From Stylophora pistillata (lineage: Eukaryota), in the NCBI RefSeq assembly GCF_002571385.2, contig NW_019217784.1:2881780-2945779 (forward strand): a DNA stretch of 64,000 bases, in the 5' to 3' direction. The notes beneath the pieces are model-generated. The model was not told the origin of the DNA. It worked only from the letters and a program-made list of their open reading frames with translations, and did no database searches. Below, one piece after another: positions 11,901 through 20,984 of this stretch; the first letter of the stretch is position 1; every line of letters starts with the position of its first letter. Both the position numbers and the translations under genes were made by a program.

Positions 11901-14900
11901 ATAATTTATTGTAGAGGTGAAAATCGTCAACTCTCACTGTACTTTTAACCCTTTCACTCCCATGAGTGACCAAGACAGAATTTCTCCTTACAATATCAAT
12001 ACAATATCAAGCAGACAAGTGATGAGAATATAGAAGAATATCAGTTGAGGAAGGATTATTAGTTGATCCAATACCAAATTCACATAACTAACATCATGAG
12101 AATTGTGTGGTAGATTACAGGAAGAATTTCTTGGGAGTTAAAGGGTTTTAAAATAGAATTATGAGAGATTTTCCGGGCCAAAAATCTTTAGAATTTTTTA
12201 TTGCCTCTTTCCTTTTGCTCTTTGTTGGTGCTTGTTTAAACTTGCCTTTTTTTCAATCAAATTGAATAATTACTTAAAAAAACCATTGGAAACAAGGAAA
12301 AAAAAGTAGCAGGGAGGGATTGAAGATTAAAGAGAAATAAACAAATAAAACGTTAAGTTGATTTGATAGGAATTAACAGAGGTTTTGTTTTGATATATAT
12401 ATTTCACTGTCATGATTGTTTTAGATGACTGGGCATTTTTTGGAACATCATTATTTTTAGATACATTACTGTCAGTTAAAAGTGAAAATAATGTCAAACC
12501 TGAAAAGCACGTTAACTAACTGTATTTAAGATTTTATGGTTTAATCTATTTTTTCTCATTTCATTTCTTTCTATTTCACTTGCACATTGATACATTAATT
12601 CATTTGTCCTGTTTTTTATTACTTTAATCATTTCTTCATGTTTTCAGTCATTCGTTATTCTCTCAATGCTCTGTTGCTCTGAAATCCACGTAGAAGTTCT
12701 AACGAGGCTTTAGATTAATTTTCAATTTTTTACTTACCATTTATAGAGTCATGTTCACTACCTTTGTTCAAAGTTGTCACCTGTAAGCATCTTCATATTG
12801 TGAAGAATTAAGAACTACTTTAATTTTTTAAGTCTACCATTTGCTAGAATTCGTAGTGTGTGTGGTAACACAGTTTCAATTCATGTGAATATTAGACACA
12901 AATTGATTTATGAAGTAGATTTTAAGGCATGACCAGTGCTTTTGAGCATTTTTGTTCTGAATCTTTTGGTGTTTATAAGAACAAATAAATTATGCAAAAG
13001 GTGGGTGGGTGGGTGCCATTGGAATGCCAAAAACTGTAACTTAAACAATCCTGATTTATTTGTGTTCAGCTGATGTTGGAGATACTGGTGCTGAGTTTGA
13101 CAGAGGGTTTCTACAAGAGCTGAGAGATCTGAAGGTGTTTGTGAATGACAGAGAGATTGTGGACGAGCACAAAAGGTTTGTTCAACAACTTCAAACAAAT
13201 TTGCAGTTGCTTTTCTTTTAAGAAAGTTGTTTTACTGAAGCCTCACAAGGTGATGGTTTACAAGCTGGACCTCAAAACAATTCTAATGGCCAGAAGAACT
13301 TTACTGTTTTGAAATTGTAACAACAGGATCAGACAGAAAACTGCAAGGGCAAAGGTGCCTCAGTTCATAATTTTTTTTTTATATATATATATTTAAATAA
13401 TTTCAAACATTTCAAGAACATGGCTATAATTAGGAAATGTTTTTTTTTTTGTTTCAGCTTGGTTTGCAATGATATAGCTAAGCGGTTCACTAAAAAGTTG
13501 GCCAAATCTGTGGAGAGCAACTTCAAGGTATTCTATTCAATTTCTTTCTGGCCTCCTTACCTAACATCCAACAAAGTTTGCATCTTTTTTTTTCTTTTTA
13601 AGTAAAACAAAATCTTTCTTTACATCAGAGTACCATGAATCACAATAGGGACCTTAAGCAACCACGACGGCGACGGCAACGAGGACGTGGAAAAACAAGA
13701 GATCTAATTGGCAGTACAATAGCTCAGCNAATCAAAACTGAATTTTTTGATGCCAGTCACACAACGTGTTCCGATCCATCAAGCTCTGATCCATTACCCG
13801 AAAAATAGACGAGGTCAGAACTCTTCTTCGGCAGTGTAACCGGGTTTATTGAAAATAAACGTTTAAGGTGAAACGAGAAAGCGTATTCACCGGAGCACCT
13901 ACAAAATTACAGTTTTCTATTTTTTGACAGCATGCCTCCACAATGCTTAACGAACAATACGTGAAAACGTGTAACGCAACGAGTTACACGCGACTGAACA
14001 CGCGTACCCTTTCAATGTAAGGTAATGACTAAGTGAGCATAGAGTATTAAAGTGAGCATAGAGCAGATAAGTGAGCAAGAAGCTAGAGTCGCTCTTGGCT
14101 ATCGCCTTGAGCGACTCTTACGCTTCTTTCGTGCTTAGCAACCTCCCGCGTGCAACCATAACTCAATAGTGTACGCTGTGGTGTTAAATAGAGCCCGCAT
14201 GTAACCAGTTATATCATAAAAGGAATAGACCGCATCTTTTGCGGGCTCTATAACTTGATAAAGCCACTTGGGATGTTGGGAGAACACTCGGAAAGCCGAT
14301 CAATTACTCCCCTTCGGCTCGGGATTTTTAAGCTTTCCTCGTGGAACATCCTGCGTGGCTTTACCACATTAGAGAGCCCGCGAAAATGTCCTCTATCACT
14401 TTCTCTATAGAGTCTTTGTCGAGGTCTCCTAAATATTGCCGCCGGTCTCATACACAGTAAAGAAGTCAAGGATGTTTTAAGTGACTTTGTAGAAAAGGTA
14501 ATTGGAAGTAAGCTGTGTTGTTTTTTCATGGATGACTCTTTGTGGAATGTCTTCCAGGTTGAAATTAAAGTCTGGAGGTATTTTTTTCTTTTTTGTCCTT
14601 TTTAGTTGATTTTGTTTCGTTTCGTTACCTTTCGTTTAATTTTTTTATGTGTTGTTTTTACTTTTTTGAGGGTGTGCGCGTACGTGCGCGTGTACATGCG
14701 TGCGTGCGTGTGTATATGCGTGCGTGCGTGTGTGTGTGTGTGTGTGTGTGTGGAGGGAAGAAACCAGAGAAGCCTTGAAAAAAAAAAATCCAAGCACGGA
14801 CAAACAACCAACAAGAAACTAAATCTACTGGTGACGTCAGGTCTTAGAATCGAATCCAGGCCAGAGCGAGCAGATGTGATGGCTCTCACCCCGGCACCAT

Positions 14901-15946
14901 GTCTCTGCAGCCCAGATTAGTCTTCCTTACGTTTTTTTTTTTTCTGTTGTTGTTTTTTTTTTTTGTAGTTTATCGAATCGTGCAAGCAGCAAGAGTGGGT
15001 TGCGAATGAGACGGACATTTTTCTCGGTTCTTTGGTGGATACCTGCGGCAGATTGGAATCTTTGCACAGGTATATGCACTAGACATGTATACGGACGCTG
15101 AATGATAAAACCAATAGAATCACTTTCTACGGCACAGAGAATCTCTTGTAAATATCCAATGAACGCGATGAATGCAGGTGCAAATCGAAAGGGCGTCTAC
15201 TAGAGAGCGTCTGTGACAGGTGGAAAAGAGAGATTGACCATATTTGGACTTAATTTCAATTTAATGAGTGTTAGATAAAAGCAAGACGCCACCTCAGAAA
15301 TGAGATCAAGGAAAGTTGCTTTGAAATATTCTGGGTAAAATTGCAGATCTTCATACAGAAGTTTACGCTCGGAGAACTGTTTCGTGTCGAAAGCGATACT
15401 GTGGCTCTGAAAGAGAAAGTTATCATTCGACGAAAAAAAACTTTGATCCACACTCACATGCGTCCATTTTTGTGTGTGTGTTTCGCGCGTGCAAAACGTA
15501 GAATTGCACGCATGTCAAGTGCGTGTAATGCTGCGGTACACGAGAGCGACACAGCAAAAGATAGCTGGGGTAAACAAACGCGAAAAGGGAAAAAAAAACA
15601 AAAAGAGAACAAGAATAATTTAGGGTGGGGAGGGTATTTAACATGGATTTATACCGATAAGATTGATAAATTAGAGATAGATTTTGTGTAGACACACAGC
15701 ATGAGGTAGCTCTGTTGGCAGCGCTCATTTTCAAGTTTCTTTCGCCGTAAGATTGATAAATTAGAACTAGATTTTGTATAGACACACAGCATGAGGTAGC
15801 TCTGTTGGCAGCACTCATTTTCAAGTTTCTTTGACCGTAATCTTGGCTCTTTACTTTACAGAATTAGTCTGGAACGCTTGATCCCAGTGTATTCACGTTA
15901 CATGACCGTCTGCCAAAAGTGCATCGTGAGAATGTACCATGACTGA
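8911..15946 (+). CDS. FIBP: Acidic fibroblast growth factor intracellular-binding protein; exons 8911-8992, 9606-9804, 10023-10149, 10286-10389, 11309-11365, 11754-11842, 13070-13175, 13458-13527, 14411-14497, 14969-15069, 15862-15946
   Basis: GT-AG, phase-consistent exons translate to [27 protein letters not shown]...[21 protein letters not shown]...KSCRRQFDN...[20 protein letters not shown]...RMYHD*, colinear with vertebrate FIBP as I recall it (ends RLYHD). Confidence 0.95.
14670..14752. repeat. (TG)n/(TGCG)n microsatellite in a FIBP intron
   Basis: Alternating purine-pyrimidine tract. Confidence 0.95.
15655..15840. repeat. About 92-bp tandem duplication just before the last FIBP acceptor
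   Basis: taagattgataaattaga...agacacacagcatgaggtagctctgttggcagc...ttcaagtttctt occurs twice. Confidence 0.9.
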
Positions 15947-16534: not shown

Positions 16535-17383
16535 CAGGGCTCGACACTAACTTTTCAACTTACTATTCAAGTGGCTAGTGACATCTTAGATGTTTTTACA
16601 TGGTACGACAATTTCAGTTTGTTTACTTGCAGTTTGTTTATCATTGGGCTTGCTATAGAAAGCTAAGAAATAGGGTTAATTGCGAAGTCAAGGCAGCAAA
16701 ATCCAGGTATTATTGTGACTTGATTCTACTGAGAGGCAAAGGGGGATTCAGGGAAGATCTGGAAGGCGGTGAATGAGGTGTCTTCTCGCGAGACTAAATC
16801 CTCGAGCCCACAATGTATCGTAGCTGATGGTGTTGAACACACCACTCCAGCCTCTATTGCATCCGTGCTCAAATATTATTTCGCTTTCATTAGCAGAAGT
16901 CTTGCAATTAAAATATCAGATGCTGTTATGTTCCCAGTCAGATCGGCCACGAAATTACAGTATTTCTCGCTTTACGAAGTTGACGAGGAAACAGTACTCA
17001 AGCATCTGCTTTGTCTGAAGACAAATAAAGCTATTGGCTGGGACAGCATCAGTGCGAGACTCTTAAAGTGTGGCGCGCGTGTTATTTGTCCCTCGATCAC
17101 CAAGTTACTGAATCTCTCTATTCGCACTGGCAATTTTCCTGAAATATTGAAATGCTCGAAAGTGGCTGCACTGGAGATAGGACAGATGCGTGAAATTATC
17201 GCCCAATTTCTATTCTGCCAACGATGAGTAAAATACTGGAAATAGTCGTCCACTTCCAATGCTATGACTTTCTAAATTCAAATAACCTCATTTCAAAGTC
17301 ACTAGTGGAAATTGAAAACCACTAGCCAAAACTGAATTTCTACTAGTCTGTGGCTACTGGGCTACCGTTAGTGTCGAGCCCTG
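16535..17383. mobile_element. hAT-like MITE with CAGGGCTCGACACTAAC termini, interrupted by the LINE fragment
   Basis: TIRs cagggctcgacactaac / gttagtgtcgagccctg; related short copies at 54279-54464 and about 52178-52346. Confidence 0.75.
16640..17300 (+). mobile_element. Degraded CR1/L2-type LINE ORF2 fragment lying inside a hAT-like MITE
   Basis: LKTNKAIGWDSISARLLK...SITKLLNLSIRTGNFP, then frameshifted NYRPISILPTMSKILE. Confidence 0.85.
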
Positions 17384-18356: not shown

Positions 18357-18396
18357 GTAATTTCCCCGAAACTGGGGATTCCCCGAATCGAAATTG
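18357..18396. promoter_or_regulatory. NF-kB (p50-type) site GGGGATTCCCC with an adjacent kB-like half site and IRF-like AANNGAAA motif upstream of the protease
   Basis: GGGGATTCCCC at 18374-18384, GTAATTTCCCC at 18357-18367 and GAATCGAAAT at 18385-18394, about 135 bp 5' of the ATG. Motif match only. Confidence 0.5.
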
Positions 18397-18519
18397 GAAC
18401 AATGGATCATTGATCAACGTATGTCGCGTGACTAACCGTGGGTCATTCGCTCACGGCACGGCAAAACTAAGAAGTAGCAGCGACGATACCAACATTTCAA
18501 GTTCGTTTCAGTTAATGCG

Positions 18520-20415
18520 ATGAGTCTTGGAAACGCCGCAGCATCAAACCAAGGTAAGAAAAGCATTAAAATCATTGTGAATTATCATTCCTCGGAATTT
18601 CAATTTGCGATCGAAATGTTTTACTCTGAGTTGTGCCACTCTGTCTTAAGCGTCAAGAGATACCAAAGGGCTCATTTGATAAAGCTTTTGCTTATTCATA
18701 TCGCAAGCGCCTAAAATCCACTATTTCTATGCTGAGTGAATCGTTTTTGACTGCTTCGGAGTAAATCTTGAGAGCATGGGAATTTATCGAAGATTAAATA
18801 TTCATGATGTTGCAAAAGAAAAGAATCGAAAGTTCAGTGTTTACCGATGGCTGGCGGCTTTCGGTCTGTCCATTTCCGGTCCATGTCTAAGAACGAGACT
18901 TTTGCCTATCAGAATCGTACTTTTGGTGCTTCGGTTTAGCTGACATAGACTGAAACTAGGAATTCAATCGAAAGAAGGAATCAAGGCGGAACTTGGGATT
19001 TCAATCGCGTGATCTTCTTTCATAGGATTAAAATTCTTTTCTTGTTGCGATCCTTTGTCACGCGATCCTGCAGTCGTTACGCCGTCATGACTTTTACCAT
19101 CTATTTTCCCATTTCAAGTAATTTGAGGTGAAAAATTCTCCACTTTAATTTCCAGGGGCAAATGATGGCGAGGATGAGGTCGATGCCATCTTAAGGTAGG
19201 TTTGTCCTTATCGTCTGTGATTTATCATTTTTCAGCGCGAAAAGCGGAGTTAGATTGCGTATCAGTCCTCGCCAATTTTAGTCATAAGTGAGCTAAGCGG
19301 GAAGCACGCAAAGGCATGGGGTTTAAGGGAGAAAACAGTTCATAGGTTAATTGTGGGAAGAAGATTTTCCAAAATACTCCTTTCTCACATAGCCAATTGT
19401 CTACTGCGATTTGTACCGCAATAGACCATTTTTTATAAGAGCGAGTTCTACTCACCCTGTCTGGAGCAGATATTTTGAGTTTTTCGTCTTTACTTTTAGG
19501 CACAGCGAAAAACGCTTTCATGAGGCACACTTGGGGATCCTCGATGCTCTGCGGGAATTGGTCAACCCAACGCGCAGAGCAGTAGAGGAGGAAGCCCTGT
19601 TCAATGGAGAGCTACAGAGCAGCCGCTTTCTCTACGAAGGGAATAAAGCTTGCAAGTTTGTGGGAAAGATATTCCTGCAGAACGGAAATCAAGGAACGGG
19701 TACATTGTTGTCCGAAAGGGTCCTGCTGACAGCTGCACACATTTTCAACAATTGTAAAGAGGGCGAGGTGTCGTTTGAACGAGTCGATCCTGACCGAAGC
19801 TTCTATCAGATGTCAGAGGTGAAATTTGCTCTGGAACCGGACACTTTTTTCCTGAAACATCCAGATAAAGGTCTCGACATTGCATTGATTGCCGTGTCCG
19901 AGAGATCGCTTGACGGTGAAACACCCATCCGTGAAATGGGTTTCTGCAAGAAGGTGTTGCCGTCGATAGCACCAGGCACGCACGTGAATATCATTCAGTA
20001 TCCCGAAAATGGCAACCAAATGGTGGTGCTGCGACAGAACCACGTCCTGCACTATGATGAAAGTTTCCTGAAGCTCTTTTCCAAGGACTTCGTCGAACAC
20101 CACCGCTACGAGACACGGCGATGTGCAGTGAAAAAGAACTCGTGGAAGTTGCCATTTAAAAGGGCTCGAGAAAATGTGGCTTCGTCGGATACCAGTTCGC
20201 CATTTCTGCATTACAGAGCAGACACCAAGCACGGTTCCTCGGGCGCGCCATGTTTTGACGACCAATGGAATCTTATTGGTTTCCATCACTGCGCACTCTT
20301 AGTGGAGCACAAGAAGAAACCAAATATGTTTACTTATGAGGCTAACGAAGGTGTTAGAATTAATGTTGTATTTGAATGGGCTGAAAAGGTTGAACTTGAT
20401 GGCTTCGACTTGTAA
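18520..20415 (+). CDS. Trypsin-like (Trypsin_2 / V8-like) serine protease resembling bacterial effector-associated proteases; exons 18520-18553, 19156-19195, 19500-20415
   Basis: Triad motifs LTAAH, GLDIAL and DTKHGSSGAP, plus GTGTLL, VNIIQYP, FDDQWNLIGFHH and NEGVRI. Two small 5' exons splice in phase (MSLGNAAASNQ-G-ANDGEDEVDAIL-R-HSEKR). Confidence 0.85.
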
Positions 20416-20675
20416 ACCCGTCACCGTGAAGGATATGGGAACTATTTGGAGGAAAATAAATTAACTTAATTGGACAACAGGTCTCAAAATTCTAAATTTA
20501 GAATTGTGGTGATGTCAATTGAAAATTATCCCTAATCATAGAAAACAAAATAACCACGCTTTTATCTTTAAAGATGACGTAAGAAATAACCTGACGTCAT
20601 TCCAATAGAAATTTATAGTTTACTTATTAAAAATAGATAGACTATACACTTCTAAGCTTTATATATATATATATA

Positions 20676-20984
20676 TCTTATTAACCAAGCGCGAGGGCCG
20701 TACTGGGAGAATATCGGCCCGAGGTCTTGACAGTACGGACCGAGCGCAGCGAGGTCCGTACAAAAAAGACCGAGTGCCGATATTCTTCCAGTACGGTCCC
20801 GAGCAAGCTTGGTTAATAAGAGATTTATTATACGACTGAAGTTCAAAGGGACACAAGTGCGGTATCATCCGGGACCATTAGGGACAGTGCCCGGTCCAAT
20901 ACTGAGAGACTATTGACCGGCAATAGAGCATTTTGATTGGTTGATTTTAGTTATTGGCCCTGTGACTGCCCGAGTCGTGTATTA
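20676..20984. repeat. Twin-hairpin interspersed repeat (family B); fragment also at 51419-51465
   Basis: Dyad tcttattaaccaagc...gcttggttaataa, spacer gagatt, dyad tattatacgact...agtcgtgtatta. Confidence 0.75.

Follow-up and report, generated by a model that had tools for sequence, protein, structure and literature searches.

LOC111340559 of the coral Stylophora pistillata lies on the plus strand at positions 18520-20415 of the window (the 64-kb stretch of DNA analysed here, contig C1:2881780-2945779), is divided into three exons and encodes a 329-residue product named by NCBI 'uncharacterized protein y4fB(-like)'. Our analyses make it probable that this is a single-copy coral gene descended from a bacterial protease module, horizontally acquired and thereafter vertically inherited, and an old transfer from bacteria to corals is well supported. 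The encoded protein is in all likelihood a serine endopeptidase that is active inside the cell.

The kinship with bacterial proteins emerged from sequence searches in which exon 3 served as the query, since exons 1 and 2 (11 and 13 codons) do not offer enough length for a search; a Pfam scan and an alignment were made with the database protein P0001. Run exhaustively against 1.84 billion representative sequences, phmmer yielded 2551 matches at E ≤ 1e-3, of which only three reached E ≤ 1e-30, namely the coral cluster and two clusters designated P0032 and P0033. Members of the bacterial protease-nuclease family scored 77-100 bits. The remaining matches share the motifs GTGxL, LDxxLVAV, VNIIQHP, LRxN, FLHYxxDTxPGSSGxPVFNDxW, HH and ANEGVR, and also possess a pre-protease helix, ERIxGxxDLxxxxFLExGxxAARxVGRI, the coral version of which is EEEALFNGELQSSRFLYEGNKACKFVGKI. 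Alignment of a eukaryote-only with a bacteria-only profile (hhalign) gave a probability of 100% and an E-value of 1.7e-50 over 216 columns, from the pre-protease helix onward.

When every prokaryotic species was represented by one genome, 587 loci were confirmed, the best 80 of which are spread over more than 10 phyla (e.g. Planctomycetota, Myxococcota, Actinomycetota, Chloroflexota, Acidobacteriota, Cyanobacteriota, Bacillota and Pseudomonadota) and have open frames mostly of 600-750 residues. The domain scan of these relatives covered 70 of the nearest loci and detected a nuclease domain after the protease in 59 of them, in nearly equal numbers of Endonuclease_1 (30) and Endonuclease_NS (29), and more distant bacterial members are fused to the effector-associated domains EAD1/EAD11. 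Together with the profiles, these fusions support the expectation, voiced in an earlier note on this DNA made from the letters alone, that the motifs would follow nuclease- or EAD-fused bacterial Trypsin_2 proteases and not FAM111 or HtrA. Matches were also found in 51 plasmid records, among them Bacillus megaplasmids and the symbiosis plasmids of rhizobia; 'DNA/RNA non-specific endonuclease' is their usual annotation (the sources also use 'endonuclease G' for the family), and phage records gave zero matches. In single cases among the bacterial loci (L008-L087) the protease is coupled to a subtilase or to an alpha/beta hydrolase. Taken with the two alternative nuclease families, this looks like a constant protease with a swapped effector behind it.

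The bacterial protease-nuclease fusions (Trypsin_2 followed by Endonuclease_NS/NucA or Endonuclease_1, including the rhizobial y4fB-type plasmid genes) and the coral protein share the same protease module, with the pre-protease helix and the motifs GTGxL, LDxxLxAV, VNIIQxP, LRxN, FLHYxxDTxxGSSGxPxFxDxW, HH and ANEGVR in common at a single-sequence identity of 25-37%. Unlike the fusions, the coral protein has no nuclease, carries a loop insertion of 46 residues, is encoded by a spliced animal gene with two extra 5' exons, and lacks part of an insert that the fusions have after the HH motif. A tblastn search for a nuclease remnant with full-length bacterial proteins found nothing else in the window at E < 0.1, and Endonuclease_1 had no match anywhere in the coral genome.

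A conflict system in which a nuclease would be released by proteolysis, the NucA-trypsin (or NucA-peptidase) system, has been predicted for such bacterial proteins (Kaur, Burroughs, Iyer and Aravind 2020, PMC7159879), and the label 'defence system' for the bacterial family is accordingly a published prediction. The coral protein is derived from the NucA-trypsin family but is not a member of the system, because the defining nuclease is missing. PADLOC returned only weak matches inside the protease domain (RT-Protease_XI at E 4.8e-8, PDC-S45, LmuA and PDC-M35A), and the neighbourhoods of 33 bacterial loci, taken as the two nearest open reading frames (ORFs) per side, were without a conserved partner: among 131 neighbouring ORFs, Trypsin_2 and AAA_16 occurred three times each and nSTAND1 once. 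Operon partners (additional trypsin paralogues, EAD1 proteins and STAND NTPases) are not to be expected for an animal gene, and they are sporadic even in bacteria. The earlier note had spoken of an acquired prokaryotic defence protease; the bacterial origin is supported, and the defence part is a prediction.

The coordinates, the two tiny 5' exons bounded by GT-AG introns and the 916-nt catalytic exon had been read correctly from the letters, as both the sequence and the NCBI model show. The model (P0001, 329 residues) is 100% identical to exon 3 and has the same splice pattern. The reading frame is unbroken, 34, 40 and 1 nt providing 25 codons ahead of the first exon-3 residue; residues are numbered here within exon 3, and the number in the full protein is obtained by adding 25 (His80 = His105). 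The features of the gene are as follows.

18452..18553, plus strand: exon 1; 5' untranslated region (UTR) reaching back to 18452 or further, translated portion 18520-18553 (11 codons and 1 nt), ATG at 18520
18554..19155, plus strand: intron 1; 602 nt, GT..AG, joint present in X1 and X11 RNA contigs and in one X22 raw read
19156..19195, plus strand: exon 2; 40 nt, peptide ...DEVDAILR, conserved among corals
19196..19499, plus strand: intron 2; 304 nt, GT..AG, joint present in X1 and X11 RNA contigs
19500..20415, plus strand: exon 3; 916 nt, pre-protease helix and Trypsin_2 (together the entire portion of probable bacterial descent), stop codon TAA at 20413-20415
19621..19653, plus strand: family-specific helix; exon-3 residues 41-51, FLYEGNKACKF, aligned to bacterial FLExGxxAARxVGRI
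19738..19740, plus strand: catalytic His; CAC codon, His80 = His105, invariant column
19876..19878, plus strand: catalytic Asp; GAC codon, Asp126 = Asp151, invariant column
20065..20202, plus strand: clade-specific insertion; exon-3 residues 189-234, helix and basic disordered loop, between the LRQN and FLHY strands
20239..20241, plus strand: catalytic Ser; TCG codon, Ser247 = Ser272, in GSSGAP, invariant column
20416..20650 (at least), plus strand: 3'UTR; the RNA contig of X1 record 1 extends to 20650, the start of an abundant repeat

Transcript data confirmed that LOC111340559 is a genuine spliced and expressed coral gene. Both GT..AG joints are present in RNA contigs from two unrelated studies, X1 (2014, k-mer depth 22.9) and X11 (polyA RNA-seq, 2021, depth 32.5), so that RNA across 18553/19156 and 19195/19500, which the earlier note had proposed as a check, was indeed found spliced. 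One RNA contig of 1313 nt runs from 18452 to 18553, continues with exon 2 and then covers 19500-20650, whereby the transcript extends over at least 18452-20650, and a raw read of X22 (a 2026 run) spans the first joint on a strand that fits a plus-strand mRNA. A random-primed library gave faint coverage of the introns, low-depth unspliced contigs also exist, and the whole stretch is contained in three DNA-type runs. Transcript variants comprised two indels, both in frame, and 7 synonymous versus 10 non-synonymous substitutions, a rough sign of moderate constraint. No further copy of the gene's own family was found in the genome.

The same data bear on the proposal that bacterial contamination or an assembly chimera explains the gene, to which we attach a negligible probability. 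At least one contig of the assembly, C2372 (8.4 kb), is probably bacterial, but both spliceosomal introns of LOC111340559 are spliced out in polyA RNA, the gene sits amid animal genes on a contig of 2.97 Mb, and its orthologues in further coral genomes also lie on Mb-scale contigs. The guanine-cytosine content of the exon (0.48) is unremarkable against that of the introns (0.39), as expected if the transfer is old. Contamination is therefore ruled out by the spliced RNA joints. As for the small contig, C2372:7396-7824 (locus L088) belongs to a 502-residue DegP-type ORF with Trypsin_2 and two PDZ domains (E 1.5e-35), and the contig looks like a bacterial one inside the coral assembly.

Exon 3 matched the Pfam family Trypsin_2 (PF13365) with 57.9 bits, against a cut-off of 27.6, and an E-value of 2.5e-15. 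Alignments of 31, 90 and 22 sequences all keep the triad His80/Asp126/Ser247 (in full-protein numbering, His105/Asp151/Ser272) without exception, and the intact triad noticed earlier thus holds across 90 aligned relatives. The protein has about 60 residues ahead of the protease domain and stops about 20 residues past it; a Pfam scan of the full protein found no domain besides the protease, and in particular no PDZ, Death, TIR or NACHT domain, and NCBIfam gave zero matches. The N-terminus, MSLGNAAASNQGANDGEDEVDAILR, is acidic and without a hydrophobic core, from which it can be read that the protein has no signal peptide and is not secreted, in agreement with the earlier reading. Exon 3 encodes six Cys (residues 51, 85, 149, 208, 251 and 264).

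An AF2 model built with 90 aligned sequences had a mean predicted local distance difference test score (pLDDT) of 82, with both barrels above 90. It places a helix at residues 41-51 (pLDDT about 94) ahead of the first beta-barrel, and within the insertion a helix at 195-211 followed by a basic stretch (213-227) that is disordered (pLDDT < 50). The overall fold is the double beta-barrel of chymotrypsin-type proteases, with a Foldseek probability of 1.00 and VIA Z-scores of 21-23 to DegS, DegP, FAM111A and Spl. Thr242 and His262 are invariant and aligned with the corresponding Thr and His of SplB. Since the Thr190/His213 pair of V8, Spl and the exfoliative toxins falls in the same alignment columns, an S1B-type S1 pocket is expected, and the alignment, together with general knowledge of these enzymes, suggests a Glu/Gln-type preference at P1.

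These S1B peptidases (V8, Spl and exfoliative toxins) were also the best relatives of solved structure by sequence profile: with the mixed family profile, SplB was matched at E 1.2e-15, V8 and ETA at about 1e-14 and FAM111A at 6e-13. The coral protein shares with them two residues that shape the S1 pocket, a Thr ahead of GxSG and a His of the xxH strand. S1B enzymes carry signal and pro-peptides for secretion and undergo activation at the N-terminus; the coral protein, by contrast, is predicted to stay in the cell and possesses an N-terminal helix as well as the loop insertion. Animal S1A trypsins are further removed, the Pfam Trypsin match being weak (27 bits) and S1A chains scoring about 12-19 bits in profile searches, and the acidic, non-hydrophobic N-terminus is unlike their signal peptide and zymogen start.

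FAM111A and FAM111B are vertebrate Trypsin_2 proteases that act at DNA-protein obstacles, and the coral protein could be a divergent member of a vertically inherited eukaryotic FAM111-like or HtrA-like family whose bacterial likeness reflects only the shared superfamily. FAM111 and the coral protein are alike as intracellular Trypsin_2 proteases, the protease domain of FAM111A was the top Foldseek match (E 1.9e-11), and the ESM Atlas feature list was headed by a FAM111A cluster at 0.97, on a par with clusters of bacterial origin. The fold, however, cannot discriminate FAM111A from bacterial proteases, because the VIA Z-scores are tied. Sequence profiles separate them: the eukaryote-only (coral-clade) profile matched SplB at 39 bits and FAM111A at 25.6 bits (E 4.4e-5), FAM111A ranged from 25.6 to 52 bits among the profiles, below the staphylococcal S1B enzymes and far from the E-value of 1.7e-50 of the bacterial family, and a search of the PDB with the single coral sequence did not detect FAM111A. 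The coral protein also has no long N-terminal region of the kind that holds UBL-like domains in FAM111 (a PIP box was not searched for).

HtrA, DegP and DegS have the same fold (Z up to 22.9), but the coral protein has no C-terminal PDZ domain and MucD was matched by the family profile only at E 0.0025. The coral genome contains at least 24 other Trypsin_2 matches, and those retrieved, all HtrA-like, matched at only 22-23 bits, which rules out a kinship with them beyond the superfamily. Membership in FAM111 or HtrA is ruled out by the sequence profiles, so that the descent from either family is largely refuted and, in our estimate, very improbable; the grouping with FAM111 that the earlier note had named as a possible refutation of its view did not appear in sequence (25.6 bits, below SplB).

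Some of the other Trypsin_2 genes have an organization of their own. A tandem array at C49:618680-679320 (L089, L090 and L094) comprises at least seven uninterrupted open frames, three of which were retrieved and are about 700 residues long, with a C-terminal HtrA-like Trypsin_2 and about 430 N-terminal residues without a Pfam match; their protease is kin to that of LOC111340559 only at superfamily level. Similar frames occur on C109, and a frame on C48 holds two Trypsin_2 stretches.

Homologues with 54-80% identity were found in other corals, including Oculina patagonica and Desmophyllum pertusum, the latter living in the deep sea and free of algal symbionts. Every member of the clade has the triad unchanged, and the position of the intron-2 acceptor and the exon-2 peptide are kept among corals, with D-x-x-DAI(L/I)RH conserved in P0010, P0005 and P0192. 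It is plausible that the N-terminal exons are new, as had been proposed, their peptide being conserved in corals and without an evident bacterial counterpart. Loop insertions were present in all 30 members of the clade and in no bacterial match, the distance from NIIQxP to DTxxGSSG being 50-78 residues in the former and 30-44 in bacteria.

Trees were built from 178, 146 and 55 domain sequences, the 55-row tree being the careful one. In them, corals formed one group, which was joined by P0032/P0033 at a support of 97-98 and by P0054/P0251-P0254 at 95-98. The 14 eukaryote-like rows of the careful tree constituted one clade (95/96), as did all 30 in the quick tree (support 97), and the stem leading to it measured about 1.0 substitutions per site. 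The frames of P0032 and P0033 seem to continue into an intron directly behind GSSG, and both are for this reason regarded as eukaryotic genes; P0032 lies on a contig of 626 kb. P0054 and P0251-P0254, sister to the coral clade, are stand-alone proteases of 320-380 residues on contigs of 1.6-2.9 kb, in which the insertion at the same loop is shorter, HQG replaces HH and GNYG replaces ANEG.

The members of the clade outside named corals could point to a transfer that is older or wider than stony corals or that passed through another eukaryote, leaving an anthozoan or still older family with many losses; P0032/P0033 and the P0054 group would then belong to cnidarians of other kinds or to further marine eukaryotes. 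Both groups join the corals at support 95-97 and share the insertion site, the readthrough after GSSG in P0032/P0033 is intron-like and the P0032 contig long, and the short contigs of the P0054 group look like transcripts. No named eukaryote outside Scleractinia was present among the hits, however, and the exhaustive phmmer search found only three clusters at E ≤ 1e-30; we consider this wider history possible but rather unlikely.

Several points weigh against the proposed acquisition of a bacterial protease by corals. By structure search and by language-model features, FAM111A and bacterial proteases come out equal. Among the bacteria the trees collapse into a polytomy, which prevents any donor from being named, and the clade is nested in bacteria at weak branch support and only when the tree is rooted on the EAD-fused relatives. 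With P0032/P0033 and P0054/P0251-P0254 in the clade, there is doubt as to how old and how widespread the transfer is. Catalytic activity and P1 preference are predictions from sequence. The direction of transfer is inferred from the thousands of bacterial sequences in more than 10 phyla, often plasmid-borne, against a narrow eukaryotic clade.

In the history that we consider probable, the large third exon descends from the protease part of a bacterial fusion composed of an N-terminal helical region, Trypsin_2 and then Endonuclease_NS or Endonuclease_1. The gene was acquired horizontally by a forebear of the robust stony corals at the least, and possibly earlier, in a more ancient cnidarian or another eukaryote. 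Helix and protease were retained and the nuclease lost; a pair of short 5' exons and the insertion of some 46 residues in the loop were gained, with vertical inheritance since. With the nuclease gone, the protease would have to act on coral or microbial proteins, and the inserted loop and the N-terminal helix are its likely control points. LOC111340559 thus encodes a probably active, domesticated bacterial protease module.

Whether that module was recruited to coral innate immunity or regulated cell death, with NF-kB/IRF-type induction and cleavage of host or pathogen proteins reminiscent of the predicted conflict function of its bacterial forebears, is a separate matter. Its bacterial relatives belong to a predicted conflict-system family (PMC7159879) that is often plasmid-borne and whose distant members are fused to EAD1/EAD11, and the protein is probably cytosolic. 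The window has a single GGGRNWYYCC site, an 11-mer of kappaB consensus, GGGGATTCCCC, at 18374-18384; it is flanked by GAAA-type repeats and precedes the 5'-most transcript end (18452) by about 70 bp. Such sites are nevertheless no more numerous in the window than chance would give, 38 of 100 shuffles attaining at least that count, the protein contains none of the Death, TIR or NACHT domains, and the PADLOC matches are weak and domain-level, with bacterial neighbourhoods that are not conserved. An immune or cell-death role in corals is thus speculative and we regard this recruitment as unlikely. Less probable still is the fuller scenario in which a captured conflict-system protease discarded its nuclease and acquired a new regulatory loop and an NF-kB-responsive promoter to become an immune or cell-death protease.

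The genes on either side of LOC111340559 are of animal type, and FIBP, the protease gene and the TAF6-like gene all lie on one 2.97-Mb contig.

9611..13194, plus strand: exons of the upstream neighbour FIBP; three Pfam FIBP (PF05427) matches, contig 2891390-2894973
25145..25291, minus strand: exon of the downstream TAF6-like neighbour; Pfam TAF6_C match, contig 2906924-2907070

Another contig holds a further TAF6_C locus, whose matches are stronger and more numerous than the neighbour's, and in view of it TAF6L, as opposed to TAF6, is a putative label for the downstream gene. The placement between FIBP and TAF6L given in the earlier note therefore stands for FIBP, by its Pfam matches, and for a TAF6-like neighbour, the exact label TAF6L being only inferred.

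Other elements were observed around these genes. Between FIBP and the protease, a 152-residue ORF (16769-17227, plus strand) resembles the N-terminal part of a retroelement reverse transcriptase and had zero Pfam matches at E ≤ 0.01. A CA/TG dinucleotide microsatellite at 14602-14920 generates 'THTHTH' and 'CVCVCV' ORFs on both strands. Directly past the 3'UTR, an interspersed repeat (20636-20800) reaches an RNA-contig depth in the tens of thousands and has many loose ends into other contexts and one inverted joint, and is probably an abundant transcribed mobile element.

The gene may already have been encountered in a related coral. Trypsin-like peptidases are commonly mis-annotated under the name '2-alkenal reductase', and Seriatopora is closely related to Stylophora. 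Entry 12 in Table 1 of Bhattacharya et al. 2016, Seriatopora_22596, is listed as a coral-specific 2-alkenal reductase of bacterial source with a support of 92 and is not discussed in the text of that paper (PMC4878875). Seriatopora_22596 may be this gene. Two papers of the Aravind laboratory, one of them PMC7159879, do not mention the protease in cnidarians. A literature search on y4fB or LOC111340559 found nothing relevant.

Few cases of bacterial conflict or immune modules transferred into animals are known to us, and each such transfer shows how immune toolkits are assembled. Without an immune role, LOC111340559 would be one more documented domesticated bacterial enzyme in corals, a modest finding; with that role, it would be a bacterial-origin effector protease in animal innate immunity, beyond the caspase, gasdermin and STING examples. 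It offers a clean and testable case in being single-copy, expressed and conserved over distant stony corals, including a deep-sea species without symbionts, and may serve as a marker gene for dating gene transfer into anthozoans. It keeps only the protease half of the fusion, and it could reveal the target of an unstudied bacterial protease and the contribution of the new loop and the N-terminal exons.

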